Source: Octopus bimaculoides
Taxonomy: Eukaryota
Direction of reading: 5' to 3'
DNA: 64,000 nt
Assembly: GCF_001194135.2 (NCBI RefSeq)
Contig: NC_068997.1
Span: 4,821,029-4,885,028 of the forward strand
Of this stretch, positions 28,801 to 62,960 are shown piece after piece. Made by a program: the position numbers and the translations under genes. Numbering within the stretch: the stretch's first letter is position 1; each line of letters starts with the position of its first letter. The notes under the pieces are model-generated. The model had not been told where the DNA came from. It ran no database searches and was given only the letters and a program-made list of their open reading frames with translations.

Positions 28801-31800
28801 ATGGAGGTATCCTTAAACCAGAAATCTACCCCAAATGAAGAAATGACCTCTGCTAAAAGCCATCAAGCAAGCTAAAAGTAGGAATTGAATGTAAAGAGCT
28901 GGAAGAAATATTACAAGGCAGTCATTTTGGATGTTTTTACAATGTACCACTCTAGATTGGTTGTTCTTTTCTGACTCCTGAAAGAATGAAAGGCAAAGTT
29001 GACCTCAGTTGGACTTGAACTTGGGCTACAGAAAGTCAGAACAAATGTTACAAGGCATTTTGTCCAACACTATAATAATTATGGCAATATATCATTTAAC
29101 TTAGAATAAGATGGATAAGCTGTAAACGTGTTGCTAGTTAAGACAGACTGTATCACAGATGGAGTGGTCATCTTTATATAATAGTACCTTCTTGCAACTA
29201 AGTAGAGGTAGACTGGATAGTTCACAGTAAAGTGCCTTGGTCATGGACATAGTACAGTGAACTCTACCACACTGTGATACCTAATTATGGCCAGATACAC
29301 TGGACTATAGACGGTTAAGTATCTTGGTCAATTTCATATGAACTGGTGATCATTCAGTGGGTAATGCCCTTTTCTTTAGACTAGCCGTCATTACCTTAGA
29401 AAGGTTTTACTGTCTCCTTCTATCCATTTTCCTGTACTCTCATAGAGAGACGATTCATTTGTTTCTACAGCTGCATGAATATACTTTTCTGCCACTAAAC
29501 AGTCAACTGTGATGAAGTAGGGACTAGTGAAAAATTGGTTTTGGTTAAGCCATGCAGACTAAACGAAGCACAGTGACTGTATTAAGAGCTGACCACACGA
29601 CCATGTAGTCAGTAGTCTAGCATCTTAACCTCATAATGTTTGTGTTCCAGTTGTAAGATTCTTCAAGGAGCAGTGTAAAAATTATCCCACTCCAGATATA
29701 CAGAGAAATACTTGAAGTGGATTTGACTTATTGACCCATTACTTTCTAACCAATTAACTAAATGTTTTCCTTAATTAAATCCTAATTTGTTGTTTTCATT
29801 CATTGACAATTTTTAATATTTCATTTTATTGTAATTATCATTATTTTTTTCCTGATTCTTACAGATTATTCCTGTGCATACCAAGGAGATATTCTCCTGC
29901 AGGGACACCTGTACATATCCCTTGGTTGGTTTTGTTTCTATTCCAAGATCAGAGGCCGTGGCAGGCATGTAAGTAACATTCCCCTTGCTTTTGAGAGCTG
30001 GAATCATATGTGACCCACATAACAGCATAGACAACGTGTGGTACATTGATCCCACTATACAATCACATAGAGAGGAAGGCAAAGACACGCACTAGCATAT
30101 TACAACTACTGGCCCTTTTTTGCTCAGTGTTTTCTGTCTCTTCTATTGAGACCACAATGATCATGGCCCCTTTCAACTAGCAAGGCTCACCCAATGTATT
30201 TCTCCCCATCTCCATTTAGGCCCCATTCAATATCTCTGTTCTCTCCCCAAATCTGGTTCTCTCAAGCCCACCCTATGTCTGTCCTCTCCTTCACTCACCA
30301 TCCCTCTTGTGTTCCCCCACACACCACACATTTGCTGTACTTTCATGGAACTTGAACTTACCATATGTGCCACATGTTTCACAAAGTTACAGCCATTACA
30401 ATTTCTGATTTATTTTATTTCATGTAGAAAAGTATGATTGGTTATTGATTTCTAACTGGCCAGTCAGCAGTTCGAGTGACAAGGGAGCATCAGTGCAACT
30501 AAGGCAAAACAAATATACTCTAGGGTATTGTAGTCCAGAGACATCTGTTCATTTGATTTGTTGCTGATGTTTACATGTATTGCTGATCTATGTTGGCAAA
30601 AGATACAGATATACAGAGACACATATAATGGACTTCCTGCACAGATTCCATCTACCAAATTCTATTTACAAGCCATTGGTTAACTTGAAGCCGTGGTGGA
30701 AGTTCTAACAAGTCATGAAGTTGTATAATGAAGTTTTCTTTACCACATGACCATACCTGCTCATATACATAATACATAAGATAGTTACACCCATGTATGC
30801 ACACACACACACACACACACACACATTCACAGCAGGTTATCTCCTAGTTTCTGTTTCAGTTTAATGTTTCTCCTTCACCTGATATTGATCGACCCAAAGC
30901 TGTGCCAAAAGACATTTGCCCAAAGTGTGAAGATGTGACCCAATGTAATTGAATTCAGAATCATTTAGTTGTGAAACAGACTTATTAACCACACAATCAT
31001 AGCTGTCTGTCTTTAAGGTTGTCTTTGAATAATGGTGGAACTTGGCATCCTTTCTTTCAGATTGAAATCCCTCTTGACAATGTTCTTTGTGTGACCAAAG
31101 AGAAAACAGCATTCATCATTCCAAATGCAATCGGAGTACAAACCACAACAGAGAAGGTAAGAAATGAAACTCTACACTTCAAAATAATGAGTGTGTGTGT
31201 GTGTGTGCGCGCGCGTGCACGTAGTTTGTGCGACTCTATTACTGCCATCATTAAACATCTCTGTTTATGCAGAATTCTGTGTACATGTAGTTGTGTGTGT
31301 TATACATACAGACACACACACACACATACACCTCACAATATCCTGACTAGGTTGATATTGTATATATGTGATATGGAAAATATATGCACTGTATGATAAA
31401 CAATAACTAAATTGCAGGAAATTTTGTAAATATCACATAACTATATATATTTATGTGATATTTACAGTATTTTCTGCAATTTTATTATTGTTTATCATAT
31501 TCCGCATATAGTGTATGTATTTTCCATATCATCATGCTGGCATGAGTTGACCAGTTTGACTGGAGCTGGTGAGGCCAGAGGCCACACCAGGTTCCATTGT
31601 CTGTTCTGGCATGGTTTCTACAGCTGGATGCCCTCCCTAATGCCAACCAGAGTGTACTGGGTCTTTATATGTGGCACCAGCGCCAGTATCAATCATGCTA
31701 TGGCAGATGGACCTTCTTTAGTACAGCAAAGCACCAGATATCTTGCTCATCTCCTTCATGAAGCTCAATGTCTTGAGATCGGACTTCAGTACTTCATACT

Positions 31801-37803: not shown

Positions 37804-40800
37804 GCAGCTTGCTCTATGGTGCTCTTTCTTCTGTATTAAACTCTAAATGATATTATAATTAAATTCAGCTTTGTTAGAGTTCATAAGTATTTAATCACAA
37901 TCCTGTTTACTTTGTTTCAGTATGTTTTTGGTTCATTTGTATCCCGTGACGCTGCCTACAACTTAATGCAAGATCTCTTTGACCGTTATCAGGAACTGGT
38001 ACGTTTTACATTTTGCATGGAAGATGGATATCAAATGACAATGGTCATGATAGATAATGTATGTTGGAGTGCATCATCCTCTTTAATGTCAGTTGGTGAA
38101 AGTGATGGACAGTCCTTCCTGTTGCTAACCTTTGCCTCTTTTTTCAAGTTAGGAATCTCTTATTTCACCTCTTCAAAGGAGTAAAGCAAGTAGACGTTTT
38201 TGTTGGCAGGGTAAATGACAACTGTGGACAAACTTACATAGTCTGCAAGTGTAAACATACATACAGACTTGTGCACAACCACATACACATGTACACACAT
38301 ACACACAAAACCATACACATATATGCACATGTGTGTGTGTGTGTGTGTGTAAGTTTGTAAGCCTACAATCACAGTTTTAGAACTATGGTATTAACCATGC
38401 CAAAGTCTTGAAGTCAGCACTATAAGCTAACAAAGAAAACATTAATATTTACGGTATGTAAAGCAGCAAGCTGGTAGAATCATTATCACACTGGGCAAAA
38501 TGCTTAATGGTGTTTCCTCAATCTCTAAATTCTGAGTTCAAATTCCACCAAGATCGACTGCCTCTCATCCTTTTGGGGGTCAACGAAAAAGTACCAGTTG
38601 AGCACTGGGGTTGATGTAGCCCTTCCCTCAAAATTTAAAATCAATATCTACAGTATGTCTATTGTTTACAGTAATAAACTGTAAACTATGCACCTCTCAT
38701 GATTCCTGTTGATAGCTTGGTGGATTGTATCAGCCAGAGTTTAATTGTGTAGACACCTTACCCACAGGATCCAGTTTGAGTCTCTCTAATTGACCTTTTA
38801 TTTTTCTTTTGCAGTCTGGAGATTCTTTTGCTGAGGAATCTGGGATTTCAGCAAAGTTTAATGTAAGTAAAGATTCACAGTTTTGTTGTTGTGGTGGTGG
38901 TGGTGGCAGCGGCGGCACTGCTACTGTTGTTGTTTTATTTGTTTTTAGTCCCAGGTCAACTTTGATTAGACAAGACTTCTGATTGAAAGTGTTTTAGCTG
39001 CCGCCATCCCAACTTTGTGTATAAGGGACTACATTGCCTTGTATATTCTTCTTTATGTATGACAGAAGTGTATGATTTAAAGATTTGACTGCTATTTCTT
39101 GTAGCCAGTGACCACTTAGAGCTCTCCCACATTACCATGTCATTGAATGTGATTATGATGATGGTAATAGTGGCAATAGTAGGGTAGTGGTGGTGGTATT
39201 ATGATGGTTGTTATGATGGTTGTAGTAGTGCTACTGCTTGTGGTGCTAGTATTGATTTGTTTGCTTTTTTTTTTTTCTTCCTTACTTTTCTTTCAGGAAT
39301 CTGGAGTAGCAGCTTTGGCAAAGTCAACGTTGTCGATGCCACTGAGTAAAAACAACCTTTCTGGAGCCATCATTCATCCATTGATACCTAAGAGGAAAAG
39401 CCATTCAGAATCTAGTGTATTTTGTTCGGATTACAGTGGTGTCGCCGAAACAACAGATTCTGAAGATAACAAACTTTGCCAACCTGGAAAAACGAAAACT
39501 TACAAGCGAACTCCAGTGAAGGCAACAATACCTTGTGTGAAAACCCAGTTTACAAGTTCGACACCCACTAAACCTCAAGTATCGCAGAAACCCTCATCTG
39601 TTGGGTCCAGCCATTCCAAAAAGCCTGTTACTGTCCATAATAGCTGGTTCATCATGCCTTATTTGTCACAGTGTATGTACCTCTTTATTTGTCATGACAG
39701 ACAGAGGTGTATGAACCTCCTGTCTGTCATTCTGCATTTATCACCTCTATATGTCACAGTATATGTACCTCTTCTATCTCTCTCAGTGTATGTACCTCTT
39801 CTATCTCTCTCAGTGTATGTACCACTTCTGTATGTCACAGTATGTACCTCCCCTGTACGTCACAGTGTATGTACCTTTATATGTCACTGTGTATGTACTA
39901 CCTCTATCTGTTACGGTGTATGTACCACTTCTATCTGTCAGAGTGTATGTACTTCATACTTCTATATGTTACATATATGATGTTAGGATACATTAAACAG
40001 ACAATACTGCACATTTATATATAAGGAAATGTTGTTTTATATAAACAGCACAGTCTTACATATTAACAAACATTGTAATTTATCATAGGCCAGCAGAGGT
40101 TCTATAAGAAATTAATATATCCCATTTGTTATCCATTCAGGTTTCAACTGTCAACAGACATATGAATCTATATGCCAGTTAGCCCTCAAGTTACTACGGT
40201 AAGTCAAAATAATGGCTTTCAATTTCTCTCCCTCTAACATTTATTTTTTGCAATTTTATTAAAATTCATTGATCTTTATCAGTACACTCTGTATATCATT
40301 TGTATTTAACAGTATCACAAAAAAACCACTAGCTGTGCACATGTGTATGTATTTATATGTAGTGGTGGTGGTGGTAGTCCGCTATTGTTTTACTTACTCT
40401 TTCTTTGTCAAAGCTACCAAACGTCAAGATTGGCTGCACTAAATAGTACTTATAACATTGTAGTTATACACTCTAACTTATTATACAGGACTTATAGTCT
40501 GTCTAACACACTATATGCACATACACGTACATATAGTACTGTAGTAGCATAGTAATACACTATATAGTACTTATATGTATCGTAGTAATGGTAATACACT
40601 ATGTATCACCTATAATACTGTAATCACACTCTAAGGCATCATTTAGTAAACAATAATGCTGTATATAACACCTACATGTAATCATAGTGATGCTTATACA
40701 CTGTACATCACATATAGTATTGTAGTAGCATTCTATTACATCATCTATAGTACTATTGTAGTGACACAACAGTATACAGTATAGTACTGATATTCTAATG

Positions 40801-43800
40801 CACAATATACAACTACCATAATATTCACCACATACTAAACGGTCTAACTCCAAATAGTTTTGTTTTTTTTTCCCCTCTCATCCTACTCTTCTCTAACATC
40901 TGTCAACTGATTTCAGGTTACCAAAGGCACACATGGTACTAGCAATATGTGCAGCTATGTAAGTATTACCATTTCTCAATAGAATCTACTGCTTTATTTG
41001 TTGTTGTTGTTTGAGAGCTCCACCCCACCAGGGGAACCCAGATCCAACAGACATATCTAGGATCATCCTGTCTTTTATTCAGTCATAGTGTATGTAGGAC
41101 TACATCATATGATGTGTCTGTAAGACAGTAGCAGGTGTAATTTGAGGAAGGGATATTTGGCTGCTATTTCTAGCAGGTTGAGTAATGACCATGCAGAAGT
41201 TCCTTTTGCAGATCATTGTTGATGTTGCAGTCACTATAGTCTCCAACAACTGTTGCTGTCTCTGCCAGTTGGCAGAAACAGTTATGCTTCAGTTATATTA
41301 AGGCGGTGAGCTGGCAGAAGCGTTAGCATGCTGGGCGAAATGCTTAGCGGTATTTTGTCTGTCTTTATGTTCTGAGTTCAAATTCTGCTGAGGTCGACTT
41401 TGCCTTTCATCCTTTACACACTGGGATCGATGTAATCAACTTAATCCCTTTGTCTGTCCTTGTTTGTCCCCTCTATGTTTAGCCCCTTGTGAGCAATAAA
41501 GAAATAAGAAACAGTTATGCTTCAGGAAGCCTCTTTCTGGAATTTTAATTCATTCCTCTGTGATCTGAATTCAAATCCTGTTTTGATAAAATTTGCCCTT
41601 CACTCTACCTGGGGTCAATGGTATTTACTAATCCCCCTTTCTCAAATTTGCTAGCCTTGTACCTAAATCAGAAATCACTATAATAATAATAATAATAATA
41701 AGAGCACCCAGAGAGCACAAACCTCTGCCAAAGCAACACCAGCGTCCTCTCAACAGAGATTATTTTTAAAATGAGAATATCTGAAATAAACTCGACTGCT
41801 CTCACAAACGAGAATACTGAAAATGAACCTGACCGCTGTCAAAAATTAAGTAAAAAAACAAGAAATATAATCCAGAATCCTTGCCCAGTACCAGATCGAT
41901 CCCAAAATTTAATAAGTTTGTGCTGGTCATGAGGCCAAGCATCCCTGAAAGTTTCATCCGAATCCATCCAGTGGTTCTTGAGATATCTTGTCCACAGACA
42001 AACAAACAAATATGACCGAAAACAATACCTCCGCCTTCGCTAAGGCAGAGGTAATAATAGGGCAGAGCATAACCAAAAATTGCTCTTTTGGGGACAGCTA
42101 GGATTTTGAGATTGGTGCTTGGATGTTGAGTGTCTTCCAGGATACCCAGCACCTAAATACCAAGTTTTATAATTTGTGGATAGAGACCCTGTGAGACCTT
42201 TGACAACAGGATGCTGTCTACTCTCACAAAATTAACCAGAGCAAGTAAGAGCAAGATCTTTGAGAAATAAAATATAATGATGATAATCCTTTCTACTATA
42301 GTCTCAATGCCTGAAATTTTGGGGGATAAAGTAAGTCATTTATATAAACCCCAGTGCTAAACTGGTATTTATTTTTTCTTTTGTAAAGAGCTGGCAGAAA
42401 TGCCTCGAAGCATTTTGTCTGACGCTCTAATGAGTCTACCATCTTACCACCTTAATAATAGAAATGGCTTCAAAATAAGGCACCACATTGAAATGTTGAG
42501 TCTAATTAGTATTTTGATGGGTGGCCACTTGGGAAATGTAGATGTTAGTGTGAGGTCAATGGATTGACTGAATCATTAGAGCATTGGACAACTGCCTTGC
42601 AATATTACGTTTGGCTCTAAGATGGTAAGTTGGCAGAATCATTAGCACACCAGGCAAAATGTTTAGTGGCATTTCATCTGTCTTTACGTTCTGAGTTCAA
42701 ATTCTGCCAAGGCCGACTTAATCCTTTCAGGATCAATGTAACTGACTTACCCACTTCCCTGAAAGTGCCAAAATTTGAAATCAATATTTCTTCTGGCTCT
42801 TTATTCTGTGAGTTCAAACCCTACCAAGATTAACTTTGCCTTTTATCCCTCCTGGGTCAATAAAGCACCAATCCAATACTGGGATTTATTTAATTGACAA
42901 ATCCCCTCCCTCAAAATTGCTGGACATGTGCCTATATACATTCTGAGTTCAACTTCTGCCAAAGCCAACTTAGTCTTCCATCCTTTCAGGCTCAAAAAAA
43001 AACAAGTACCTGTTAAGCACTGGGGTCAATCTTATCGACTATCCTCCTCCTCCTCCTCCAAAATTTCAGACCTTGTGCCAAAAGTAGAAAGGATTATTAT
43101 TATTATTAAATCGAAAAAAAAAAAAATTCTTATTATCATTAAGAGTGATAATTATTATTGTAATCAGCTGGAAGGCAGCGAGCTGGCAGAATTGTTAGCA
43201 CACTGGACAAAATGCTTAGTGGTATTTCACCTGTCACTACATTCTGAGTTCAAATGCTGCCAAGGTCAAGTTTGCCTTTCCTTTTGAGATCAATGAAACT
43301 AGCACCATTTGAGCACTGGGACCACTGTAATTGACTAAACCCCTCTCACAAAATTTCAGGCCTTGTGCCTAAACTAGAAAGGATTATTATTGTCAGTTGG
43401 ATTGCAAAAATCAGTAGTGTCAATCAAAATGCCTTGTGGGATTTAGTAACATACTGAACTCAAATATCATTTAGGTCAAATTTGTATTTCATCTTACAGA
43501 AGTCAGTAGAATAAAATACCAGTGAAACACTTGCATTAATACAATTGACTGGTCCCTCCTCCTCTTTCCCCACCAAGTTTGTGGGTGCCACAGAGAGAGA
43601 GTGGTGACAAAAATATCTTACATATTTAGTCTTGTTTAATATTATTTTTTTGTATATGTTGTTTTTGTTTAGTCCCATATCAATTTTGATTAAAGTCAGC
43701 AGGTTGTGGTTTGAGAGGGATTCGGCTGCTATTTCTAGCAAGTCAATGCTTGGAGACCTTTGTTGTGATAACATAGATATTTTAATATGTGTGATATGTT

Positions 43801-45303
43801 ATTCTGTAGTTTTAAAAAGAAAAAGTAAAGACAAAACAGTCTGTGGGATCAGGGACAACCTGGATACACTTATCCAGTTATACCTCTCTTGTATTAAATA
43901 TTTTAAACTTCCATCTCATGACCAAAAATTTCTAAAACCTTCTTCTACCCAACTGACTACATTTTGGTGAATCTTTGACTCTGTTGAAATATCTCTAATC
44001 CAGTATTTTGTCTTTGTTTCTTCCAGTATGATATTCCTGCTGGTATCTGCCGTCACCCTCACATATAAGGTGCTGTTAATCCAGGCCAAACTTGATACTC
44101 TGCAGGTTTGGTCACCTGCCTTAAAAAACTTGTATAGGTAAACACTTTACACTTGTTTGTTATTCTTTCTCTTGTTAGTTTCATTCAGTCATTGGGCTGT
44201 GACCATACTTGGATATCACCTTCAAGAGGGGTTTTTTTATCAATTATATCAATATTTGTCCTTACTGTTTTTTTTTTTTTGTTTTTTTCCTTTGATCTCT
44301 TAGCTTTAATCTTTATCTCTCATGTTTCTGCAATAACCATGATGAAGCAGTTTCTGATTCCTCTTTCTCCTCTGTTCAGAAACCACTGCTCTTGCTTCCC
44401 TTTCTCTGTCCAAATACCAGCCATACAGGACATAGTAGTTCCACAATATCCCACCCTTACTAGTAGTACTACTGTACACTACAATCTTCATGTCTCACAA
44501 TTCCCTTAGCCTTTCAAATTTTAACCCCTTCCTTTCATGTTCCCTCTCCATGTTGTCTTCCTGAGGCACCTTGAATTCAACAATCAGCACTTTTTTTTTT
44601 GGTCACATTAGACCATGCTAATATACTCAGAGAATTGTTTCATTAAGGTAATATGGTTGGAGAGCACAAACACTTTCTTCAAATCCACTTTTACCTTTCA
44701 GTCATTTATGTCATGAAGACATCTAAGTGTGGCTTTCCTTTCTTTGTGTTCTTCTGCTCTCCTTTCTCACCCTCCTTATGGAAAAACAACAAGGTGCAAC
44801 TTGTCTTGATTCTCACTACATTGACACTGCTGCATTGTTGCTGCAGTACATCAAGGGTATGTCATCAGATATACCCTGTAACGGATTACTTTTATGCTCC
44901 AGTAATGTATACGCTTCACATCAGAGTACTTGTTGGACAACAAACACACGCATACAGATTATATACGATAAGCTTCTGTATAGTTTGCATCAACCAAATT
45001 CATTCACAAGATATTGATCAACTTGAAGTGATGTAAATTTTTAGGGTGTAGTTAGAGCAGGGAAGAAGGTAGTTATCCCAAGACTGGAGACTTAGGCCAA
45101 ACGTCTGCAATAGATTGGACCAGGGGATATTTAAAATAGGTGACAATAAGTCAACCACCCCAAAACAGGAACAGTCCCTTTGATGAACATCTACACAAGT
45201 TTCTGTCTACCAAATTTCACTCACTAAACTTAAGTAGACCTGAAGGTATGGTAGAAGATACATGTACAAAATGGTGTGTACTGAGATTGAACCCAGAACT
45301 CTT

Positions 45304-45345
<42 letters not shown>

Positions 45346-45488
45346 ACACACGATTTCTATACCTGCCTACTTGTCATTTCAGAGATAAAATACATTCAGA
45401 CATTTACATGATGCGAGCCCAGAGTCATAGTGCATTGGTCCAACAGCTACACCTCGTTTTAGAGGCTAATATACATGTATTGGAAGAA
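16863..45488 (+). CDS. GRAMD2B: GRAM domain-containing protein 2-like gene (GRAMD2A/B-type ER membrane-contact protein), 12 internal coding exons, 5' and 3' ends incomplete
   Basis: Exons 16863-17021, 17838-17877, 22915-23011, 29865-29968, 31061-31156, 37921-37998, 38815-38862, 39297-39672, 40141-40198, 40917-40958, 44027-44137 and 45383-45488 all have AG/GT ends and matching phases, giving one stop-free frame of about 438 codons. The GRAM domain reads KFHKLFKSVP..YSCAYQGDILLQGHLYIS..FCFYS..IEIPL..KEKTAFIIPNAI..YVFGSFVSRDAAY. A TM segment follows and there is no VASt domain. The A versus B paralogue cannot be decided. Confidence 0.9.
17838..17877 (+). CDS. GRAMD2B: GRAMD2-like exon (SSPVAGMKKYPGR)
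   Basis: ttttcttttcag acceptor, AGG|gtaagc donor, phase 2-0, 40 nt. Confidence 0.8.
18950..20200 (-). mobile_element. Highly degenerate Penelope-like element
   Basis: Minus-strand remnants VVY...Y*YGHTEQRL (GIY-YIG-like) and a terminal atgaaga-ttgc..gcaa-acgtgt hammerhead-like relic. No intact ORF. Confidence 0.35.
21664..21840 (-). mobile_element. Penelope-like terminal-repeat-type short element with hammerhead-like core
   Basis: Minus strand ctgttgaagagcgtagctcgaaacgtca within a CpG-rich insert flanked by (TA)n. Confidence 0.6.
22005..22165 (+). mobile_element. tRNA-derived SINE family B (copies also at about 2815-2965, 6590-6740, 8025-8150; minus strand at about 5750-5895, 26165-26310, 30630-30760)
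   Basis: ggctgtgtggtaa..aaccacatggttccaggttcagtcc..gggcaagtatcttctactatagcc..aagccttgtgagtggatttggtagacagaaa, ending in microsatellite. Confidence 0.85.
22915..23011 (+). CDS. GRAMD2B: GRAMD2-like exon, start of GRAM domain (EMLLHVPTVSKSKVAKFHKLFKSVPRSESLID)
   Basis: ttttccag acceptor, C|gtaagt donor, phase 0-1. KFHKLF is typical of GRAM starts. Confidence 0.92.
23930..24140. mobile_element. Interspersed repeat family D (also at about 1215-1320, 16550-16800, 38950-39130, 41010-41210, 43620-43760, 52560-52750, 62380-62550)
   Basis: Shared motifs agaaatagcagccaaatctccct, ggataatgt and tttgatcatagg..gacctggggctaaacaac. Class unknown. Confidence 0.65.
24651..26057 (-). mobile_element. Cluster of three RTE LINE 3' fragments in the same orientation
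   Basis: ORF 25787-26050 reads LRWICNVS..LHWYGHVLQM..GRGRPRKT. The 3' UTR block recurs at about 24651, 24836 and 25490. Confidence 0.88.
26471..27018 (-). mobile_element. Internally deleted mariner element (548 bp) with both TIRs and TA target-site duplication
   Basis: Left TIR ttgggtcttctcataaataatgcgg versus right TIR (reverse complement) ttggatcatcctataaataatgcgg, 21/25 identical. TA at 26469-70 and 27019-20. Residual coding sequence: ..GKVSKLGQWVPH.. and ..NAWPH..HPPYSLDIAPSDYHLF..W.. Confidence 0.92.
27025..27255 (+). mobile_element. SINE family A variant with alternative 3' tail (also at about 41300-41510)
   Basis: Same head and body, with tail atccctttgtctgtccttgtttgtc..caataaagaaataa. 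Confidence 0.8.
27620..27900 (-). mobile_element. tRNA-headed SINE of a third family (plus-strand copy at about 20623-20850)
   Basis: Head with gttgtgagttcgattcc / gtggtttcaattcc B-box-like sequence, ttgagcaagacactt and ctccagtccactca motifs. Confidence 0.6.
29865..29968 (+). CDS. GRAMD2B: GRAMD2-like exon, GRAM core (YSCAYQGDILLQGHLYISLGWFCFYSKIRGRGRH)
   Basis: ttcttacag acceptor, CAT|gtaagt donor, phase 1-0. Matches the GRAM motif xSCA..DILLQG.LYIS..FCF.S. Confidence 0.95.
31061..31156 (+). CDS. GRAMD2B: GRAMD2-like exon, GRAM (IEIPLDNVLCVTKEKTAFIIPNAIGVQTTTEK)
   Basis: tttctttcag acceptor, AAG|gtaaga donor, phase 0-0. Contains the KEKTA.IIPNAI motif. Confidence 0.95.
31393..31498. repeat. 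Ungapped 48-bp inverted repeat with 10-nt loop
   Basis: Arms 31393-31440 and 31451-31498, 43/48 Watson-Crick pairs plus 2 G-U. Confidence 0.92.
31500..31990 (-). mobile_element. RTE LINE 3' fragment
   Basis: VLKEKGLRGIKCSVQKRRLLVWSYDAY.. plus the shared 3' UTR (ccatgctggcatg..tttctacagctggatgccct). Confidence 0.8.
32540..34832 (+). mobile_element. Two stacked RTE-clade LINE 3' fragments with 3' UTR and (GAT)n tail
   Basis: YADDL (ctcttatatgctgatgat), GWRKFRELLPLL, RVKGRLYDACV..LHGSETWAL, MLCWMCNVS, LCWFGHVMRM and GRPRKTW motifs. The RT C-terminal block occurs twice (about 33040-33420 and 33461-33960). gatgatgatgat tail at about 34815. Confidence 0.9.
36765..37690. mobile_element. SINE family A cluster (3 plus copies, then 1 minus copy)
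   Basis: Plus copies start near 36765, 36980 and 37230; the minus copy spans about 37465-37690. Confidence 0.85.
37680..37801. repeat. Compound (ATT)n/(ACT)n microsatellite; many other (TA)n, (CA)n, (CT)n and (CAT)n tracts occur throughout
   Basis: Direct reading, for example (TA)n at 1-60, 22155-22235 and 62965-63040, and (CT)n at 61157-61196. Confidence 0.95.
37921..37998 (+). CDS. GRAMD2B: GRAMD2-like exon, GRAM end (YVFGSFVSRDAAYNLMQDLFDRYQEL)
   Basis: tttgtttcag acceptor, CTG|gtacgt donor, phase 0-0. Contains the F.SF.SRD.AY motif. Confidence 0.93.
38815..38862 (+). CDS. GRAMD2B: GRAMD2-like exon (SGDSFAEESGISAKFN)
   Basis: tttttcttttgcag acceptor, AAT|gtaagt donor, phase 0-0, 48 nt. 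Confidence 0.8.
39297..39672 (+). CDS. GRAMD2B: GRAMD2-like large linker exon (ESGVAALAK...FIMPYLSQ)
   Basis: ttttctttcag acceptor, open for 125 codons, CAGT|gtatgt phase-1 donor. The next exon is open only in phase 1. Confidence 0.85.
39660..39960 (+). repeat. Degenerate ~27-bp minisatellite built from the exon/intron boundary (tgtcacagtgtatgtacc)
   Basis: About 10 units. GTATGT at 39673, 39788, 39815, 39830, 39840, 39867, 39891, 39918 and 39945. Confidence 0.9.
40141..40198 (+). CDS. GRAMD2B: GRAMD2-like exon (CFNCQQTYESICQLALKLLR)
   Basis: ccattcag acceptor, CG|gtaagt donor, phase 1-2. The other two frames contain stops. Confidence 0.85.
40917..40958 (+). CDS. GRAMD2B: GRAMD2-like exon, first half of TM region (LPKAHMVLAICAAI)
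   Basis: tgatttcag acceptor, AT|gtaagt donor, phase 2-2, 42 nt. Confidence 0.85.
41699..42052 (+). mobile_element. Helentron/DINE-1-like non-autonomous element
   Basis: 5' sub-TIR acctctgcc (41721-41729), 3' hairpin acctccgcc-ttcgctaa-ggcagaggt (42027-42052), aagtttcat..atccagtggttcttgagatatc core, (acaa)n tract, inserted in (TAA)n. Confidence 0.7.
42060..42288 (+). mobile_element. R4/Dong-like extreme 3' fragment
   Basis: KIALLGTARILRLVLGC*, then a 3' UTR and an aatataatgatgataat tail. Confidence 0.7.
42285..43600. mobile_element. SINE family A cluster (about 4 plus-strand copies between minus-strand copies)
   Basis: Same diagnostic motifs in both orientations. Confidence 0.85.
44027..44137 (+). 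CDS. GRAMD2B: GRAMD2-like exon, TM helix and juxtamembrane region (MIFLLVSAVTLTYKVLLIQAKLDTLQVWSPALKNLY)
   Basis: tttcttccag acceptor, AG|gtaaac donor, phase 2-2. Hydrophobic stretch followed by an L.YKV..IQ.KL pattern as in GRAMD C-termini. Confidence 0.85.
45383..45488 (+). CDS. GRAMD2B: GRAMD2-like exon, coiled-coil-like tail (DKIHSDIYMMRAQSHSALVQQLHLVLEANIHVLEE)
   Basis: gtcatttcag acceptor, GAA|gtgagt donor, phase 2-0, open reading. Confidence 0.8.
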
Positions 45489-46376
45489 GTGAGTGTTTTA
45501 AACATACATTTTGTTGTTATTATTATTATTGTTGTTGTTGTTTGTGTTTGTTTTTTTCGGTGTTTAATCCTTAATATTGTTTGTTGAAGCCAAGCTTGAA
45601 ACTGGATTTGTTTTCCTTGTCCTGCCAATTTTACATATTTTGTTGAGTCATGTGACTGTTCAAATGATGTTTCCATCACTCATCTGTTGTGCCTATGGAC
45701 TGATTGGTTAATGTACATTCAAGATCAACCAATCAATGTATACTGCATATATGTATGCATGTAAGTGTGTGTGTATATAGTATGTATATATATATACTCT
45801 TATTCTTGCAAACAAGTCTACTATTGCCAGTAACAATTGTGTAAACAAAGAAAAACATGAAGCTTGCGATGTGATGTGTCTTACCTCAAACTACACATGC
45901 ATGTGTGCAAACAAAAGGACACAGTGCTAGGGAGGAAAAAATTCTTAAACTGACCACTACTTGTAATGGTGACAGTATCTTACAGTCAAGGCCTTTGGTA
46001 TTTCCTCGGAATCAGTGCATTATCCAACATATTTTTCAGTCTGCTAGTTATGAAGTCAAAAAGATGTCAGTTGGTCTTTGATACCAGTGTGGGGTAAAGA
46101 AAGAATTTGTAAAATATGTTCATCGATGTGAAGATAGCTAAGGAGTTTGTGACCATGTTCAGATGTGAGAGGTCATGAATATAACAGAATTATGGTAATT
46201 GTCTTAAGCAACTAGCTGATTTGGCTCCAATCAAATAAATACAGAAATATAATTCACTGCTAATTACGAAAAGGAAAACATTTGTTACAACCAGATTGAA
46301 ATTCAACAATAATTAAATTTGATTCATACTAAAATACATGTATAATCTTTATTACACATGTGTTGTGTTATATATA

Positions 46377-47622
46377 CACATACACAAAATAATGGAAACA
46401 CCTTAAAATTTCAAACAAATTTATTTTAATATGGCGTAGGACTGCCTTTGGCGGTAATTACAGCTTGAATTCTACGAGGTATAAACTCATACAAAGTTTG
46501 AATTGTTTCCAAAGGAATTTTTCTCCATTCTTCAGCTAAAACAGCCTCCAGTTGTTGTAGTGATTATGGTGGAGGATATCGACTCCTTACTTGTTTTTCT
46601 AAAATGCACCATAACTGTTCAATAATATTGAGATCTGAGGACTGTGGTGGCCAGATAAAATGTTCAACTTCACTAGAATGTTCCTTGTGCCATTCAGTAA
46701 CAACTTTAGCTGTGTGAATTGGTGCATTATCATCCTGGAAGATTGTATTTCCCTCCAGAAACAGTTTTGCAACCATAGGATGAATTAGATCAGATAAAAT
46801 GCTTAAATAGTCTTGACTATTAATTCTGCCATGAAGGGAAACCATTGGGACGGTGGATTTCCAAGATACAGATCCCCAGATCATCACAGATCCTCCTCCA
46901 CATTTAACAGTTGGAAAAAGGTAGTCTGGGTCAAATGCTTCTTTTGGCTGTCTCCACACGTATATTCAGCCCATGGTCAGAAATAAGGTAAAGGATGACT
47001 CGTCTGAGAAATAACATTTTTCCACTGCTCTAGGGACCAAATTCTGTAGGTTTTTACTCCACTCTAAATGCTTTGCAACGTTTGTTTTTGAAAGTAGTGG
47101 TTTTCTGATTGCAGCTCTCCAGTGAAATCCAGCTTTGTGAAGCTCCTGGCGAACAGTTTTTGTGGAAACTGGGTTCTTGAGGTGGTCATTAAGCTCTGCA
47201 GTAATTTTGGGAGCTGTGCTTTTGTGATCCTTTCCAACAATTCGCAAAAGAGTCTGACAGTCCCTATCTGAAAGTTTTGGTTTTCTTCTAGAGTTTTGTT
47301 TTGATGAGGAGGTTTTTCCCTCTTTCTCAAAGGCTGTCATTACTTTCAAGACAGTACTTCTTGATACACCAAACATTTCGGCTGTTTTTGTTACCCTAGC
47401 GCCTGCCATATGAGCACCAACAATTTGACCTCTTTGAAAGTCCAATAGATCTGTCATTTTAATTACCTTTTTCGGATGATATCTAAAAAGAAATAGCAAT
47501 TTTAACAAAACATATTAAGCAACACTAATAATAAATCAAAAAACATAAAAATAAACTAGCTTTTGCTGGTTTTATAGATATTTCAAAATTATAATGCTAT
47601 GATGCTATGTGTTTCCATTATT
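46377..47622 (-). mobile_element. Tc1/mariner DNA transposon, Tc1-type with DD36E catalytic spacing, near full length
   Basis: TIR core aataatggaaacac (46388-46401) and its inverted copy gtgtttccattatt (47609-47622, cut by the N gap). Transposase has an HTH region and FSDES, GGGSVMIWG, FQDDNAPIH and WPPQSSDLNIIE motifs. Confidence 0.95.
46426..47457 (-). pseudogene. Disrupted Tc1 transposase (344 codons)
   Basis: ATG at 47457 to TAA at 46426 in one overall frame. In-frame stops at 46966-46968 (MG*IYVW) and 46564-46566 (YPPP*SLQQ). A local +1/-1 compensated frameshift replaces the expected NWSLEQWKNVIF with NLVPRAVEKCYF. Confidence 0.9.
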
Positions 47623-48471
47623 NNNNNNNNNNNNNNNNNNNNNNNNNNNNNNNNNNNNNNNNNNNNNNNNNNNNNNNNNNNNNNNNNNNNNNNNNNNNNN
47701 NNNNNNNNNNNNNNNNNNNNNNNNNNNNNNNNNNNNNNNNNNNNNNNNNNNNNNNNNNNNNNNNNNNNNNNNNNNNNNNNNNNNNNNNNNNNNNNNNNNN
47801 NNNNNNNNNNNNNNNNNNNNNNNNNNNNNNNNNNNNNNNNNNNNNNNNNNNNNNNNNNNNNNNNNNNNNNNNNNNNNNNNNNNNNNNNNNNNNNNNNNNN
47901 NNNNNNNNNNNNNNNNNNNNNNNNNNNNNNNNNNNNNNNNNNNNNNNNNNNNNNNNNNNNNNNNNNNNNNNNNNNNNNNNNNNNNNNNNNNNNNNNNNNN
48001 NNNNNNNNNNNNNNNNNNNNNNNNNNNNNNNNNNNNNNNNNNNNNNNNNNNNNNNNNNNNNNNNNNNNNNNNNNNNNNNNNNNNNNNNNNNNNNNNNNNN
48101 NNNNNNNNNNNNNNNNNNNNNNNNNNNNNNNNNNNNNNNNNNNNNNNNNNNNNNNNNNNNNNNNNNNNNNNNNNNNNNNNNNNNNNNNNNNNNNNNNNNN
48201 NNNNNNNNNNNNNNNNNNNNNNNNNNNNNNNNNNNNNNNNNNNNNNNNNNNNNNNNNNNNNNNNNNNNNNNNNNNNNNNNNNNNNNNNNNNNNNNNNNNN
48301 NNNNNNNNNNNNNNNNNNNNNNNNNNNNNNNNNNNNNNNNNNNNNNNNNNNNNNNNNNNNNNNNNNNNNNNNNNNNNNNNNNNNNNNNNNNNNNNNNNNN
48401 NNNNNNNNNNNNNNNNNNNNNNNNNNNNNNNNNNNNNNNNNNNNNNNNNNNNNNNNNNNNNNNNNNNNNNN
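47623..48471. other. Assembly gap (849 N); smaller gaps at 8157-8166, 18693-18702, 33810-33819, 51877-51886, 55442-55496 and 60392-60557
   Basis: Runs of N. Confidence 1.
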
Positions 48472-50245
48472 CCTCTCAAAGCTTAATTTAATTTTAATTT
48501 TTTTTTTTTTGTTTCATTTGTCTTAAATCTAAATTATTTTTACATACAACTAGTTGTCTCCCTCCCTCCCTCCCTCACACAAACACTTTCTCACGCTCTC
48601 GAACACACACACACACACAGAAATTGCCTGAAACTCAGAAATATTTGCAGTAGATGTTGGTGACTCTCTCCCATCAAATCCTCGTCTCTATTTATTGATA
48701 CAGTCTGATGCCTCTGCAAGTTACCATCGCTCTATATTTTATTGTTTTATTGTTTTTCTTTTAACTTTATTATCATCTCAGTAACTTAATATGTATTAAT
48801 TTACTTATGTTCACAAAACTTTTTAATTCCTTGTTTTCCAACATCACAGAAGAGTTGAAGCAGATAATTCTTTATCTCCCTTGTTATTGGGTTTCTCTGG
48901 ATTTTTTTTCCTCCCAAGTTTCTCAGATACACACACACACATAAATTCGTTATTGGCGATGGAAAGAGTATTTGTTCAGAATAGTAATATGTATATCTTA
49001 CTTAACATAGATATACTGTAAGAAAGCCACAATGCTACGGTATTCATCTTGAAAAGGCATCTCAGTATCACTGTTTTAACTTTCTTACAGTAGATCTACA
49101 TTAAGTATGATATACAGATGGATACACATACACACAAACACTAAATATTATGTTATCTCTCTATGTCTGTTTCTCTGATTTATTTCTCCAAACGATTTTG
49201 TTGCCTTGTGCAGTACAGTTTCAGTGTTTGAAGTTGATGTTTGTGTTTTTCCCCATACTTCTCTTCCTTTCCCGTTCTCCTCCTCTCCCTCCCAATAACC
49301 TTCAACTCATCATTATAACTCCCTGAATGAGAAACCTTGGAGTTTCTTTTTTTAAAAAAGTTTTTTTTTTATTTTACAACCAGCTTTTATTCAATTATTT
49401 TCTACATTTAAATTAAATATATACTTGAATTCACATCAGTTATAGACACACACATATACATGGCAGGGTCGTATATATGTAACACTAAATTTTAAAAAAA
49501 TAGATCAATTGGAGTTATCCAAGCAATTAGTAGACAAAACCTCCCCCTTGGGTTGCTTAATTTAAAAAACAAGGGCGATATCAATGATTTGTTGAGAGAG
49601 TGCAAAAGTGTTTAACAGGGGACGTAATTCTTTATTCACTAGTGTGTGTGAAATTGTGTGGGCATTGTGTTGTAAGTTCTGTGAATTGCCAAAGACACTA
49701 TTGAATTCTATAAACTGTCTCAGTGACAGGCCTCACATCTAGACTGACTTTTTGCTATATGCACACCTATGTATATATGTATAAAAGCAGGCTAGGTACT
49801 AAAATGAAACTCAGAACAAACTGTCATTACACATGACTTTCAGTACGTTATTCCTAGCACTCACTGAGAAAATGTACTGGTTTAGGTCCACCAAGCATAC
49901 AGATATGTGATAATACCTTTGACCTTTCCTATTTATTTCTCTTGGACCAATTTCCACTGAATTTTATTTCATCTACAGTAATTTCACATGTTCTTCTAAG
50001 AATGCCAGATTTTTATTTTCAACAGATATAATAATTAAAATGATAATAATAATTTGTCCTGTGATAACTTTCACTGAACAACATCTAGCTGACTTAGCTG
50101 AGAATAGTGACATTGGTATGTACCCTGTCATTGATCTGGTTTATGGTGACCCTATGGGAGGGTTTGGCTAACTTTAATGCCTAACTATTGGTTAAAGACC
50201 TATTGATGTGGAGAGGGTTGTGTGTGTGTATGTATGTACACACAC

Positions 50246-50284
<39 letters not shown>

Positions 50285-52140
50285 TCCTACCACTGCATTC
50301 ACTAGGCTTCTTTGCAATAAAGTTGGTCCTGTGAGAAGGAGAGGTGGGTCACTTTGATATTAAACCATCTACACTGAATCCAGTCTTCATATTCTGTGTA
50401 TGAAGTTTTCTAGCTTTCATAGTTGTAACTTAATATTGCAAAGGAAAGTGATAACAAAATAACTTAAATATGTATATAACTATCTCTGTACCACTACCAA
50501 TCTATGTTTATGTTCTATCTGAATATCTTTCAATTTATAGTAGAAAGATCAGGGACAAATACCACAAGACCTCTCATCTAACACTCTAACAAAGCCACCA
50601 TTCCACTGCCCTAGACTGGTTCTTGGTTTATTGACCCTAAAAGGGGTGAAAGGCAAAGTTGACCTCAGTGGGATTTGAACTCAAAACTTCAGAGAGCCAG
50701 AACAGATATCAAAAGGTATACAATCCACCACTCTGATAACTAGGCCACTCATGGTGCCTGCTTGGTTGTGCATTTGTGTGTGTGTGTGTGTGTGCATGAA
50801 AGAGTATAAAAATCTATTTGCATATGTGTGTGTATGTAAAGTCCCAGATTAATGTTTCACACCTTGTTAGCCTAGTTGATTTTTCTTTACTCTGTGATTA
50901 TCTTTAAACTCATTTCTCCAGTTCTGTTAGACAAAACAATTCTTCATCACTAGTTTTAAGGTTATTTCTCCAGTTTTGCTATTATTTAGACATCCTGACA
51001 GGAAAAAATGCTTCTCTCCAGAATCCCTCCCACAGTTTGTGATGAGTAATGATATGCAACAAAAGCTGAAACTCCCAGTAGTTATGGTCAGTTACCCAGG
51101 TCACAGCTCAACTATGACTTCACTAATATCCCTTATAATCTTTGGAAAAGTATAAACATCACAGCATCCTAATATCTTATTTCTACTTTCTTTTATAAAT
51201 ACTGTGTCTTAGTTCCTGGCTATATGAAACCAATCGCTATGCAAATAACTGGTAACTACCAGACTGTCTTATACAGGTATATTGAGAGGAAGATAGGGAG
51301 AGAGGCTCATTGACAACCCAATTAGTCTTGGGACTCACTTGAACAAGTCTGTACAATTATCAAAAAATGAATGCCTTAATAAAAAAAAATAATAATAAAA
51401 TGGGTTAGCTATGAAAATTACATATTGGGATGGTATTTGATGCAGAGTTGAGCCCAGAAAAATTTATAAATTTGTATTTATGTATTTTATTGGAGCAAAA
51501 ATATGCCTGATTTTAATTCTGAAGTTTTGGGGGAAATCCGAGGAAATTTGTTAAATTACTGAAAAGGAGAAAGCAAACAATAACTTGGTGTATTTTAAAT
51601 GGAAAGTGAATATTGAATTTTAAATTCTGGTTTTAAACTTGGAATCAATTTGGTCTTTTATCTGAGTTGTCTGATTCTTGAAAAGTTTTCAGAAAATATG
51701 GAATATTTCTTGCAATATATATACATGAAAACATAATATTCATAAATGGATTTGGGGAAATAATCTTCAGTTTTAGATTTTAATTTTTAATCATACATTT
51801 TTAATTGATTATAATATTAAAAATATTTTGGGGGTAACAAACTAAAGATTTTAAGCTAAATAAAATAGTTTTTTCTNNNNNNNNNNCTGAGTTGTCTGAT
51901 TCTTGAAAAGTTTTCAGAAAATATGGAATATTTCTTGCAATATATATACATGAAAACATAATATTCATAAATGGATTTGGGGAAATAATCTTCAGTTTTA
52001 GATTTTAATTTTTAATCATACATTTTTAATTGATTATAATATTAAAAATATTTTGGGGGTAACAAACTAAAGATTTTAAGCTAAATAAAATAGTTTTTTC
52101 TACATACTCTAATTTATCTTACATGGTCAGGTATAAGATC

Positions 52141-58230: not shown

Positions 58231-59393
58231 GAAATTGCTAATGTGGATGTTGTGAGAAGGCCAGAAACAAGTGTGTTTAGATTGATGTGGTGAGAAAGAT
58301 GAGAGGAGCAGAGACTGCTGTAGTAGTAGTAGTGATAGAAGAAACAGTGAAGACACAGTACTTATAATAAAAAAATGATTGTTTTGTGTTGAAGATTGAA
58401 GAATTGCTTATCAGGAAGATGATGTTGCTGCTATGTGTGCATGTGTATGTGTGTGTGTGGTGAGGATTTTGTTCTTCATAAATAAGCATATTTCTTCATT
58501 TGAGGTGATGTGAAGGGGCTGTTTTGTCAACGACATAAAATGGGGTGGATGGACAGATGGATGATTGGACAGTTGAATCAATGGATGGTTGAATGGCCTT
58601 TAAAAATAGCCCCAGTTTGTAAATGCTATCATTGTTTCCTGCCCACCGTCCATTCAGTGTGAAATAAAACTCTTCGAGGGAGAGGGAGAAACATCAATGT
58701 TGTGATAACAACCACTGTATAATCCTTTCTAGGAGTTGTATTCACAACATTTCTCCTCAATCTTTCTTCTCTGTTCCACCCCTTAACACCCAAATCCACC
58801 CAATCTAATGTAAACTATTGCCCATCCACCAGTCTGCTGGTCAGACACCAAAAGCTACATTTCTATTTCCCCACACACACACACCTTTCTACTTTCATTT
58901 TTGGTATCATTCCGTAAAACGTCTAGAATCAAGGTTTTTTTTTTTAAATTTTTGTTGGAGGTTTTAGGGGTTTTAATTATACTGACCTCTTTATTTCTCC
59001 TCCCCTTCTTAGGGACCTGCATCCTAACAAAGGTTGGAAATCACTGCACTACCAGAAGTATGTAGGGCTTGATATTTATTTAAGGTAAATGAGGATTATA
59101 TTGCCCTAATTTTGGTTCATTTGGCCTTTTCTTCAGCCTGTATGCATCAATGGATTAAGAGGAAATTATCACATTGATACCATTAACATCAAACATTTCT
59201 CAATTCATTGTCAATCATAACTTTCTCAACTCACATCAATCATGTTTCTCAATCCATGTCAGTCATAACTTTTTCAATTTATCTGATGTCTGCAGTCAAG
59301 TGAAAAAAACTGAACAGAACCATCACTTTGTAATACGATCCCTATTTACCAGAAACAAACATTCATACACATATACACAAATATATATATACT

Positions 59394-62082: not shown

Positions 62083-62960
62083 TCCACTTTATTAATACAA
62101 TAAATATGTATATATATATATCAATTACACATTATATTGATACATATATATGTATTGATAAAGTATATATAGATAGATTATGCTGTATTGATACAGCACA
62201 CATATATATATATATATAGATAGATAGATAGATAGATATAGATATTAATTCCATTGTCTTTCAATCAGTTTTATCTTTTCGACATCATTCCTAACTCTGA
62301 GTTGACCAAAATCTAGATTTTCTTTTTAGTATCTCAAGTACATTGCCCAATGATGCCATCTTCACCATCACTGCCTCATTACCTCCACTCAACAAGGAAG
62401 CCTATAATAGCAGTGAAATCTCCCTCGTACACACCTTGGGAAAGAAAGGACTAGATTGGAAAATATCAAGTCCTACATACCTCAAAAATATGGGGGGGAT
62501 GGTCAATGACGGAATGTCTTTGATCATAGGTGTGTTGTCTTGGGGGTTAAAAACATCACCATCTCCACCACCACCACAATATTGAATGATGTTGCTACTG
62601 TTGTTATGCTTCGCTCTCTCTCTCACAAATATCTTTTTTATCCCTGGACAAGTAAATCCCCCACCCCGCCTCCGTCTCTCCTATCTCGATCAGCGGTACA
62701 GGCAGGGGAGTAGCTAACTAATGACGACGATGATGATGACTATGATGATGATGATGACTTTCCACAGAAAAGTTGTAATGTATGTAAATTTAAATTTTAA
62801 ACAAACTATACACCACCACCACTACCACTACCACCACCACCACTACTACTTCTACACAATTGTGTCACTTCCTTAATACACCACACAGTTTTCTTCTCTC
62901 TTTGGTTTTTCTTGGATTTTTACAAACCCTTATTTAATATATATATATAGATCCCGTGTT

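Follow-up and report, generated by a model that had tools for sequence, protein, structure and literature searches.

The window, that is, the whole 64-kb stretch of DNA that was analyzed, contains on its + strand the Octopus bimaculoides GRAM domain-containing protein 2B-like gene (record name of the protein: GRAM domain-containing protein 2B). GRAM-domain exons are located at 29866-29969 (YSCAYQGDILLQGHLYISLGWFCFYSKIRGRGRH), 31061-31156 (IEIPLDNVLCVTKEKTAFIIPNAIGVQTTTEK) and, as the final one, 37922-37999 (YVFGSFVSRDAAYNLMQDLFDRYQEL), and the GRAM domain (Pfam PF02893, E-value 5.8e-17, 62 bits against the cut-off of 23.6) is the sole Pfam match both in the 324-aa model and in the protein XP_052829797 (P0003), with no VASt/Aster lipid-transfer domain. 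A small exon (38815-38862, SGDSFAEESGISAKFN) lies directly 5′ of exon A (39297-39672), which is 376 nt long, follows the acceptor ...ctttcag|G at 39296/39297, encodes a Ser/Thr/Lys-rich linker and ends in phase 1 (...WFIMPYLSQ(C)). It is followed by exon B (40141-40198), encoding (C)FNCQQTYESICQLALKLLR, exon C (40917-40958, LPKAHMVLAICAA) and exon D (44027-44137, IMIFLLVSAVTLTYKVLLIQAKLDTLQVW...). The hydrophobic stretch HMVLAICAAIMIFLLVSAVTLTYKVLLI, a putative C-terminal membrane helix read from the sequence, starts in exon C, and its remainder, together with the next segment, is encoded by exon D. Having both the GRAM domain and this C-terminal helix, the gene product, as judged from sequence, fits a membrane-anchored GRAM domain-containing protein 2 (GRAMD2A/2B-like).

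Exon A matches XP_052829797 at 100% (tblastn) and is conserved in the cuttlefish protein P0001. When exon A alone served as the query, the protein search returned only the cuttlefish protein, and octopus proteins were matched with a longer query; no relatives of exon A turned up in a metagenome scan, and the read-through ORF 39201-39980 had no exact match.

The 468-nt intron between exons A and B begins inside a 27-bp minisatellite (39660-39980, + strand) of approximately 12 unit lengths, 10 of which have a recognizable donor core. The unique 3′ part of the intron (39981-40140) ends with a pyrimidine-rich stretch and AG. The core of the array, as delimited by Tandem Repeats Finder, occupies positions 39746-39952 (period 27, 7.9 copies, 79% matches, score 218), and more degenerate copies flank it, back to 39660 and on to approximately 39980. 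Unit 1 (39660-39686) straddles the splice junction, with 13 nt from the end of exon A and 14 nt from the start of the intron. The junction-spanning 20-mer GTCACAGTGTATGTACCTCT coincides with the array consensus: allowing up to three mismatches, it has seven matches, all within 39665-39956, and none in the rest of the 64-kb window (0.01 expected by chance). The earlier note had described a tandem array at about 39660-39980 that starts at the donor of the exon 39297-39672, and Tandem Repeats Finder, the unit table and the 20-mer all agree with this description. The identity of the 27-bp unit as an interspersed repeat was rejected, as it has no copy elsewhere in the window.

Most intronic units match the 13 exonic nucleotides of unit 1 (TATTTGTCACAGT) at 10-12 of the 13 positions. 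The end of the corresponding cuttlefish exon matches them at 11 of 13, and therefore TATTTGTCACAGT is ancestral coding sequence. Two decapodiform contigs, one from the cuttlefish Acanthosepion pharaonis (L001) and the other L004, have the same junction with a GTAAGT donor and lack the array. These comparisons show that the array originated from the exon A junction, and that it is present in two Octopus species and absent in two decapodiforms. The segment of approximately 27 bp that corresponds to unit 1 (13 exonic and 14 intronic nucleotides) would have been tandemly duplicated once the octopus lineage had separated from decapodiform cephalopods, in an ancestor common to O. bimaculoides and O. 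vulgaris, and would then have expanded and contracted; the likely mechanisms of duplication are replication slippage or unequal exchange. The founding unit is flanked by CCT microhomology.

By its structure, the octopus array is a further case of the known class of boundary-spanning minisatellites with pseudo-donors (F7 IVS7, IFI6, CBS, LMNB2, PDGF): the units are minisatellite-sized and arranged head to tail, the first monomer carries the authentic junction, and the donor is reiterated in the intron. In the 37-bp VNTR of human F7 IVS7, the pseudo-sites have the same sequence as the authentic donor and are functional, yet they stay silent, as has been established with 50 minigene constructs (Borensztajn et al. 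2006, PLoS Genet, PMC1557585). The octopus array resembles it in that the first monomer spans the exon-intron boundary, identical pseudo-donors follow the authentic one, the copy number varies, the most upstream site alone appears to be used, and most pseudo-sites lead to a premature stop. The differences are in the unit (37 bp with 4 exonic nucleotides and 5-9 copies in F7, 27 bp with 13 exonic nucleotides and approximately 10-12 copies in octopus), in the donor (GTGGGT and GTATGT, respectively), and in the evidence for silence, which is shown by minigenes in F7, whereas in octopus we infer it from gene models and two transcript contigs. Human IFI6 (6-16, G1P3) has a minisatellite with 25 pseudo-donors in intron 2, and both in IFI6 and in CBS intron 13 just the two pseudo-sites nearest to the authentic donor are used, constitutively (PMC1557585). 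The octopus array is likewise a boundary-spanning minisatellite reiterating the donor, but no use of pseudo-sites is seen in the models, and the nearest units lack the GTATGT core. In LMNB2, with 10-15 copies of a 100-bp unit, and in PDGF intron 4, with 16-18 copies of an 81-bp unit, the authentic donor alone is used (PMC1557585). These arrays share with the octopus one the boundary-spanning repeat reiterating donors and, as far as the octopus models and transcripts show, the exclusive use of the authentic site, while they have far longer units and belong to other genes in another lineage. Closely spaced splice sites also compete for one partner in the short-range tandem donors (GYNGYN) and tandem acceptors (NAGNAG) studied by Hiller and colleagues; these, however, are two sites 3-4 nt apart that yield subtle, often in-frame isoforms, and not a minisatellite of whole junction copies.

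On the + strand, GTATGT is found at positions 39673, 39788, 39815, 39830, 39840, 39867, 39891, 39918 and 39945, and GTATGA at 39709, which are the same nine and one sites as listed in the earlier note; the phases assigned there (1, 2 and 0) were confirmed. The authentic 5′ splice site CAGT|GTATGT (39673-39678), fixed by protein and RNA evidence, is in phase 1. The GTATGA pseudo-donor (39709-39714) is in phase 1 as well, and its use would insert 12 residues in frame. Three GTATGT pseudo-donors (39788, 39815 and 39830; 39788-39835) are in phase 2 and, when joined to 40141, run into a stop after seven codons of exon B (FQLSTDI*). The remaining five (39840, 39867, 39891, 39918 and 39945; 39840-39950) are in phase 0 and lead to TAG after 13 codons (VSTVNRHMNLYAS*), as had been claimed. 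Further phase 1 GTs, namely GTGTAT at 39865, 39889, 39916 and 39943 and those of the GTACCT type, are poor donors.

All 13 protein models and transcript-derived proteins considered join 39672 to 40141 (YLSQ/E|CFNCQQ). The set comprises O. bimaculoides isoforms X1-X3 and two older models, O. sinensis X1-X4, two O. vulgaris proteins, the Logan RNA contig P0034 and the cuttlefish RNA contig P0004. Consistently, the spliced octopus RNA contig L002 reads cagt|gtttcaac and aligns in blocks 39293-39674 and then 40141-40200. No other donor is used among these 13 proteins, which, as models and assemblies generally do, report major isoforms and would miss rare or NMD-degraded products; the annotated isoforms vary at the N and C termini alone.

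This usage has no explanation in the donor sequence, as the sites 39788, 39815 and 39867 do not differ from the authentic donor between -4 and +8, and their crude U1 duplex energy is the same (-4.0 kcal/mol). The units adjoining the authentic donor are crippled in both Octopus species, with cores GTATGA, no core and ATATGT in O. bimaculoides, and GTATGA (L003 51485), ATATGT and GTTTAT at the corresponding places in O. vulgaris, and thus the distance to the nearest intact copy is 115 nt in O. bimaculoides and 133 nt in O. vulgaris.

The reading that we favor, with a probability of about three in four, is that of a lineage-specific boundary-spanning minisatellite, in which the first donor is used, the copies that follow it are silent or almost silent, and the array is neutral. 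The spliceosome would take the first, authentic donor at 39673, yielding the conserved membrane-anchored GRAMD2B-like protein, while approximately nine near-identical downstream copies would be pseudo-sites with little or no activity. Splicing from the intact copies would result in a frameshift and a premature stop in exon B. The silence may be caused by preference for the upstream site, as proposed by analogy with human F7, or, alternatively, by co-transcriptional first-come recognition combined with exon definition. In the classical competition experiments of Eperon and colleagues, equally occupied donors are reportedly resolved in favor of the one nearest to the 3′ splice site; a proximity rule of this type would predict that the downstream copies are in use, contrary to the reading of the array as a passenger.

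Constitutive, unregulated leakage at a low level is possible, though clearly less probable than this reading; it would most likely proceed via GTATGA at 39709 or via 39788, the frameshifted products being removed by NMD. It agrees with the existence of pseudo-sites identical to the authentic donor, and IFI6 and CBS provide a precedent in the two used pseudo-sites nearest to the authentic donor (PMC1557585). On the other hand, no leakage is seen in the 13 models and transcripts, the units nearest to the authentic donor are those crippled in both species, and F7, LMNB2 and PDGF do without leakage (PMC1557585).

The earlier note had proposed a donor-array switch. If donor choice were controlled, 39673 would produce the anchored protein, 39709 a protein with the 12-residue insertion, and the other sites frameshifted TM-less or NMD products, with the output being tuned. 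A regulated switch of this kind is not supported, and we consider it improbable. In its favor, the sites are indeed present in the phases described, both Octopus species have kept the array, and GTATG is in frame at the first two sites alone, the ones that by analogy with IFI6 and CBS would be the likeliest to be used. However, isoforms from different donors, which an NMD-coupled switch should produce, are absent from the 13 proteins and, in general, from the annotated isoforms and transcript contigs of the three species, and alternative sites with conserved spacing and phase are not observed between O. bimaculoides and O. vulgaris. The unit number, whose comparison among Octopus species had been suggested as a check, differs: the O. 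vulgaris array has about two units fewer, and its donors are in other phases, which argues against a tuned device.

The O. vulgaris array occupies the same place in the orthologous intron (5.9 copies according to Tandem Repeats Finder). Its intron is 410 nt long, compared to 468 nt in O. bimaculoides, and the two are separated by internal indels of 49 nt and 9 nt. The arrays are 82% identical, with 58 additional gapped columns that reflect the variable copy number, whereas the unique intron part (39968-40140) is aligned without gaps at 94% identity, and the flanking exons are 100% identical (58/58 for exon B). The array thus diverges faster than the flanking intron, which is a further argument against the switch. 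The successive GTATGT pseudo-donors are in phases 2, 2, 2, 0, 0, 0, 0, 0 in O. bimaculoides, while in O. vulgaris all of them are in phase 2. From these alignments the array seems to be free of sequence constraint and looks neutral; with the coding junction conserved, it probably matters little for the biology of the gene.

The array is older than the split of the two Octopus species, which is compatible with some function but does not require one.

The same comparison bears on a possible role of the array in U1 binding. The authentic donor of O. bimaculoides deviates from the consensus at positions -2, -1 and +4 and is weaker than the other donors of the GRAMD2B-like gene (GTAAGT, GTAAGT, GTGAGT, GTAAAC). 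Pagani and colleagues, working with exon-specific U1, reportedly found that U1 bound in the intron just 3′ of a weak donor can rescue exon inclusion. The cluster of copies might then serve as an intronic splicing enhancer strengthening the definition of exon A or, as the earlier note had it, as a decoy holding U1 unproductively. Yet the authentic donor of O. vulgaris is GTAGGT, with the U1 duplex energy of -7.5 kcal/mol as opposed to -4.0 kcal/mol in O. bimaculoides, and a similar array is kept next to this stronger donor; therefore the array is not matched to donor weakness. Moreover, the array lacks sequence constraint, and decapodiforms maintain the junction without it. The decoy thus finds no support in these data, and either U1-related role appears unlikely. 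Doubtful to a similar degree is a putative rheostat dependent on copy number, in which the mostly out-of-frame U1-binding copies would divert some of the transcripts to frameshifted, NMD-sensitive products or hold U1 on the intron, and the output of the GRAMD2B-like protein would vary with tissue or with array length across individuals and species.

The frame of exon A remains open into the array up to TGA at 39978-39980 (+ strand), in agreement with the earlier observation that it is open to 39980, and retention of the intron would add a hydrophobic repeat tail ending at 39980. However, the 27-bp unit is free of stop codons whichever way it is framed, so that from approximately 39715 on the array can be read through in all three + frames, and hence the open exon frame is no evidence of coding. 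In O. vulgaris the same frame is closed by TAG 20 codons into the intron (L003 51508-51510), which also speaks against a tuned switch, and the tail is absent from all protein models examined. We have therefore rejected the open frame as coding evidence, and the read-through tail suggested earlier is very improbable.

The least credible explanation is an assembly artefact. The window is draft sequence interrupted by N gaps, and the length of minisatellites is frequently estimated wrongly, so a mis-assembly could have made or distorted the repeat. Nevertheless, the independent chromosome-level assembly of O. vulgaris has the orthologous array with shared edge units, and the units differ enough to be assembled uniquely.

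In this locus identical copies follow an authentic donor, which makes it a clean natural case from a non-vertebrate. Since three of the copies have the sequence of the authentic site between -4 and +8, the array could be used to test whether the upstream-first rule of F7 holds in a mollusc, and the two-species comparison illustrates how such arrays may arise from a junction and then drift.

Some features of predicted RNA folding may also be mentioned. An inverted repeat at 39694-39730 (+ strand; arms of 11 nt, 100% complementary) would form the hairpin ATGACAGACAG...CTGTCTGTCAT with the GTATGA pseudo-donor in the loop. The fold of 39660-39745 has the energy of -25.3 kcal/mol (z -3.28), compared to -15.7 kcal/mol (z -0.71) for the O. 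vulgaris counterpart; the hairpin is specific to O. bimaculoides, not being kept in O. vulgaris, and was therefore not taken to be functional. The fold of the complete array is slightly more stable than that of shuffled sequences (z -2.9). As GUAUGUAC is self-complementary if G-U pairs are allowed, the copies can pair with each other, and this mutual pairing is a consequence of the repeat itself.

The exon at 39297-39672 (exon A) is followed by a 468-nt intron that opens with a 27-bp minisatellite. Tandem Repeats Finder (TRF) places 7.9 copies at 39746-39952 (79% matches, score 218), and inspection of the sequence adds degenerate units back to 39660 and on to about 39980. The 20-mer GTCACAGTGTATGTACCTCT, spanning the exon end and the donor, has seven matches at no more than three mismatches, all within 39665-39956; at this threshold there is no copy elsewhere in the whole 64 kb (0.01 expected), and thus the repeat is local rather than an interspersed element. 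On the plus strand, GTATGT sites are found at 39673 (the authentic donor, indistinguishable from three of its own copies), 39788, 39815, 39830, 39840, 39867, 39891, 39918 and 39945, and GTATGA at 39709, which confirms the array and donor positions of the earlier note. Its phases and their consequences agree with the recomputed frames: donors 39673 and 39709 are phase 1; 39788, 39815 and 39830 are phase 2, the next exon (40141-40198, exon B) then reading FQLSTDI*; and those from 39840 to 39945 are phase 0, where exon B reads VSTVNRHMNLYAS*, that is, 13 codons and then TAG.

The exons in the window correspond, at 100% identity, to XP_052829797, which is isoform X1 of O. bimaculoides GRAM domain-containing protein 2B. 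They lie at 16.86-17.02 kb and 22.91-23.01 kb, followed by three GRAM-domain exons (29866-29969, 31061-31156, 37922-37999; Pfam GRAM, E 5.8e-17), the exon at 38815-38862, exons A and B, 40917-40958, 44027-44137 and 45383-45488. No other Pfam domain matches the protein. The product is of GRAMD2 type, combining a GRAM domain with a C-terminal anchor; the term "TM-anchored" was correct, as exons 40917-40958 and 44027-44137 encode the hydrophobic helix HMVLAICAAIMIFLLVSAVTLTYKVLLI.

To see which donor is used, 13 proteins were aligned: isoforms X1-X3 and two older models of O. bimaculoides, X1-X4 of O. sinensis, two O. vulgaris models, and two proteins from Logan contigs, one of run SRR3401912 and one from cuttlefish. 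All 13 read ...IMPYLSQ(E)|CFNCQQTYES... across the junction, the isoforms differing only at their N-terminal and far C-terminal ends. A 2094-nt RNA contig with an uninterrupted 493-residue ORF matches eleven separate window exon blocks in colinear order (96-100% identity), and is therefore spliced RNA from a related octopus; it reads cagt|gtttcaac, joining 39672 to 40141. Neither use of 39709 or any other donor copy nor retention of the intron is seen among these models and contigs, which report major isoforms only and are not quantitative.

The same exon is present in two decapodiforms. In the cuttlefish Acanthosepion pharaonis it ends in ...TATTTGTCAGAAT|GTAAGT with the phase unchanged, and the intron (about 3 kb) has no repeat at the junction; a second decapodiform contig has a matching pattern, again without the array. 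The octopus exon end TATTTGTCACAGT agrees with that of cuttlefish at 11/13 positions, as read from the alignment, and most intronic units repeat these 13 nt at 10-12/13 positions and continue with GTATGTACC. An exon end conserved in cuttlefish and repeated in the intronic units makes the direction of copying clear, from the coding sequence and intron start into the intron, and supports the earlier proposal that the array is the amplified splice junction of the exon itself. The founding unit has CCT at both ends (39657-39659 and 39680-39682), which would fit slippage at microhomology.

Such an architecture is already known. In intron 7 of human F7, a 37-bp VNTR has its first monomer across the exon 7 boundary and thereby places identical pseudo-sites downstream of the authentic donor; these are functional in tests and normally silent, the most upstream site winning (Borensztajn et al. 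2006, PMC1557585). Among the other cases, the nearest two of 25 pseudo-sites are used in IFI6/6-16, two pseudo-sites are used in CBS intron 13, and the authentic site alone is used in LMNB2 and PDGF (PMC1557585). The octopus array has the structure of this class, and the models and transcripts, which report major isoforms, show use of the authentic donor; it extends the class to a new lineage and a new gene. We thus favor, with a probability of roughly three in four, the reading that the array is a neutral minisatellite which arose from this junction in the Octopus lineage; splicing would use the first donor, and the copies would be silent or almost silent. Leakage from the pseudo-donors at a low level, compatible with this reading and not exclusive of it, is possible, though rather doubtful.

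The orthologous O. vulgaris array (OX597830.1 locus, 51529-51691 of the extracted sequence; period 27) is shorter (5.9 vs 7.9 TRF copies), as is the intron (410 vs 468 nt). The edge units are the same in both species, and the two indels, of 49 and 9 nt, are internal. Identity is 100% at the exon ends, 94% without gaps in the unique 3' part of the intron, and 82% with 58 gapped columns in the array, which thus turns over faster than the adjoining neutral sequence, as minisatellites typically do. The GTATGT copies comprise three of phase 2 and five of phase 0 in O. bimaculoides, vs five in O. vulgaris, every one phase 2, with a GTATGA of phase 1. Since the phases differ between species and all 13 proteins and the spliced contig use 39673, the proposed switch among donors is unsupported, as is a U1 decoy function; a regulated role of the array is very improbable. 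The frame of exon A does stay open until the TGA at 39978-39980, as had been noted, but the 27-bp unit is stop-free in every frame and leaves each of the three forward frames open across the array, so this is uninformative on coding. The O. vulgaris exon frame reaches a TAG 20 codons into the intron (51508-51510), so the two species do not share the hydrophobic tail, and a read-through function finds no support.

O. vulgaris has GTAGGT (51449-51454) as its authentic donor where O. bimaculoides has GTATGT, and the O. vulgaris site pairs better with U1 (-7.5 vs -4.0 kcal/mol by a crude duplex energy). The pseudo-copies are all GTATGT in both species, and the two decapodiforms have GTAAGT as authentic donor; G at +4 in O. 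vulgaris thus looks like a derived, strengthening change. Units adjoining the authentic donor lack the GTATGT core in both species, so that the first intact copy is 115 nt away in O. bimaculoides and 133 nt in O. vulgaris. Selection against nearby competitors could account for this loss, as could ordinary array-edge decay; the two species share these units by descent and hence are not independent evidence.

An inverted copy of part of the unit lies 21 nt past the authentic donor and forms a stable hairpin (39694-39730) with GTATGA in the loop; the 86-nt stretch 39660-39745 folds at -25.3 kcal/mol (z -3.28). It is not kept in the O. vulgaris counterpart (z -0.71) and was discounted as functional. 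Folding of the whole array is somewhat more favorable than that of shuffled sequences (z -2.9), which is explained by self-pairing of GUAUGUAC through G-U pairs and was likewise discounted as a sign of function.

Past the donor at 45489, the O. bimaculoides RefSeq isoforms X1-X3 run into a terminal read-through tail (VSVLNIHFVVIIII...; 45489-45584). In O. vulgaris the last coding exon (LSVSLNSLKAS...TVSR*; 59165-59305) is flanked by blocks aligning to window positions 46804-47622 and 48472-48937, which places it inside the N gap 47623-48471 of the O. bimaculoides assembly; this probably explains the tail. The older O. bimaculoides model A0A0L8GL33 has 20 extra residues, VRFTFCMEDGYQMTMVMIDN, the translated intron start (38000-38059) after exon 37922-37999; being absent from every other model or transcript compared, they are probably a mis-annotation.

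The intron after exon 45383-45488 holds a minus-strand Tc1/mariner-type transposase remnant (46564-47508; DDE_3, E 8.6e-15; HTH_Tnp_Tc3_2, E 3e-14); an 88% alignment of this stretch to O. vulgaris shows the insertion to be common to both species. An interspersed repeat of ~150-400 bp occurs in many copies (66-82% alike) on both strands at about 4.0-4.7, 13.0-13.3, 27.0-27.25, 36.75-37.7, 38.46-38.62, 41.3-41.5, 42.6-43.4 and 56.6-57.8 kb, and the O. vulgaris locus contains it too; its length and copy number suggest a SINE-type element. Runs rich in GGT/GAT/GTA triplets are found just upstream of the exon A acceptor (ATGATGGTTGT..., 39150-39270) and in the intron following exon B (GGTGGTGGT, 40360-40380), with comparable runs at 1083-1165, 9241-9387 and 62811-62850.
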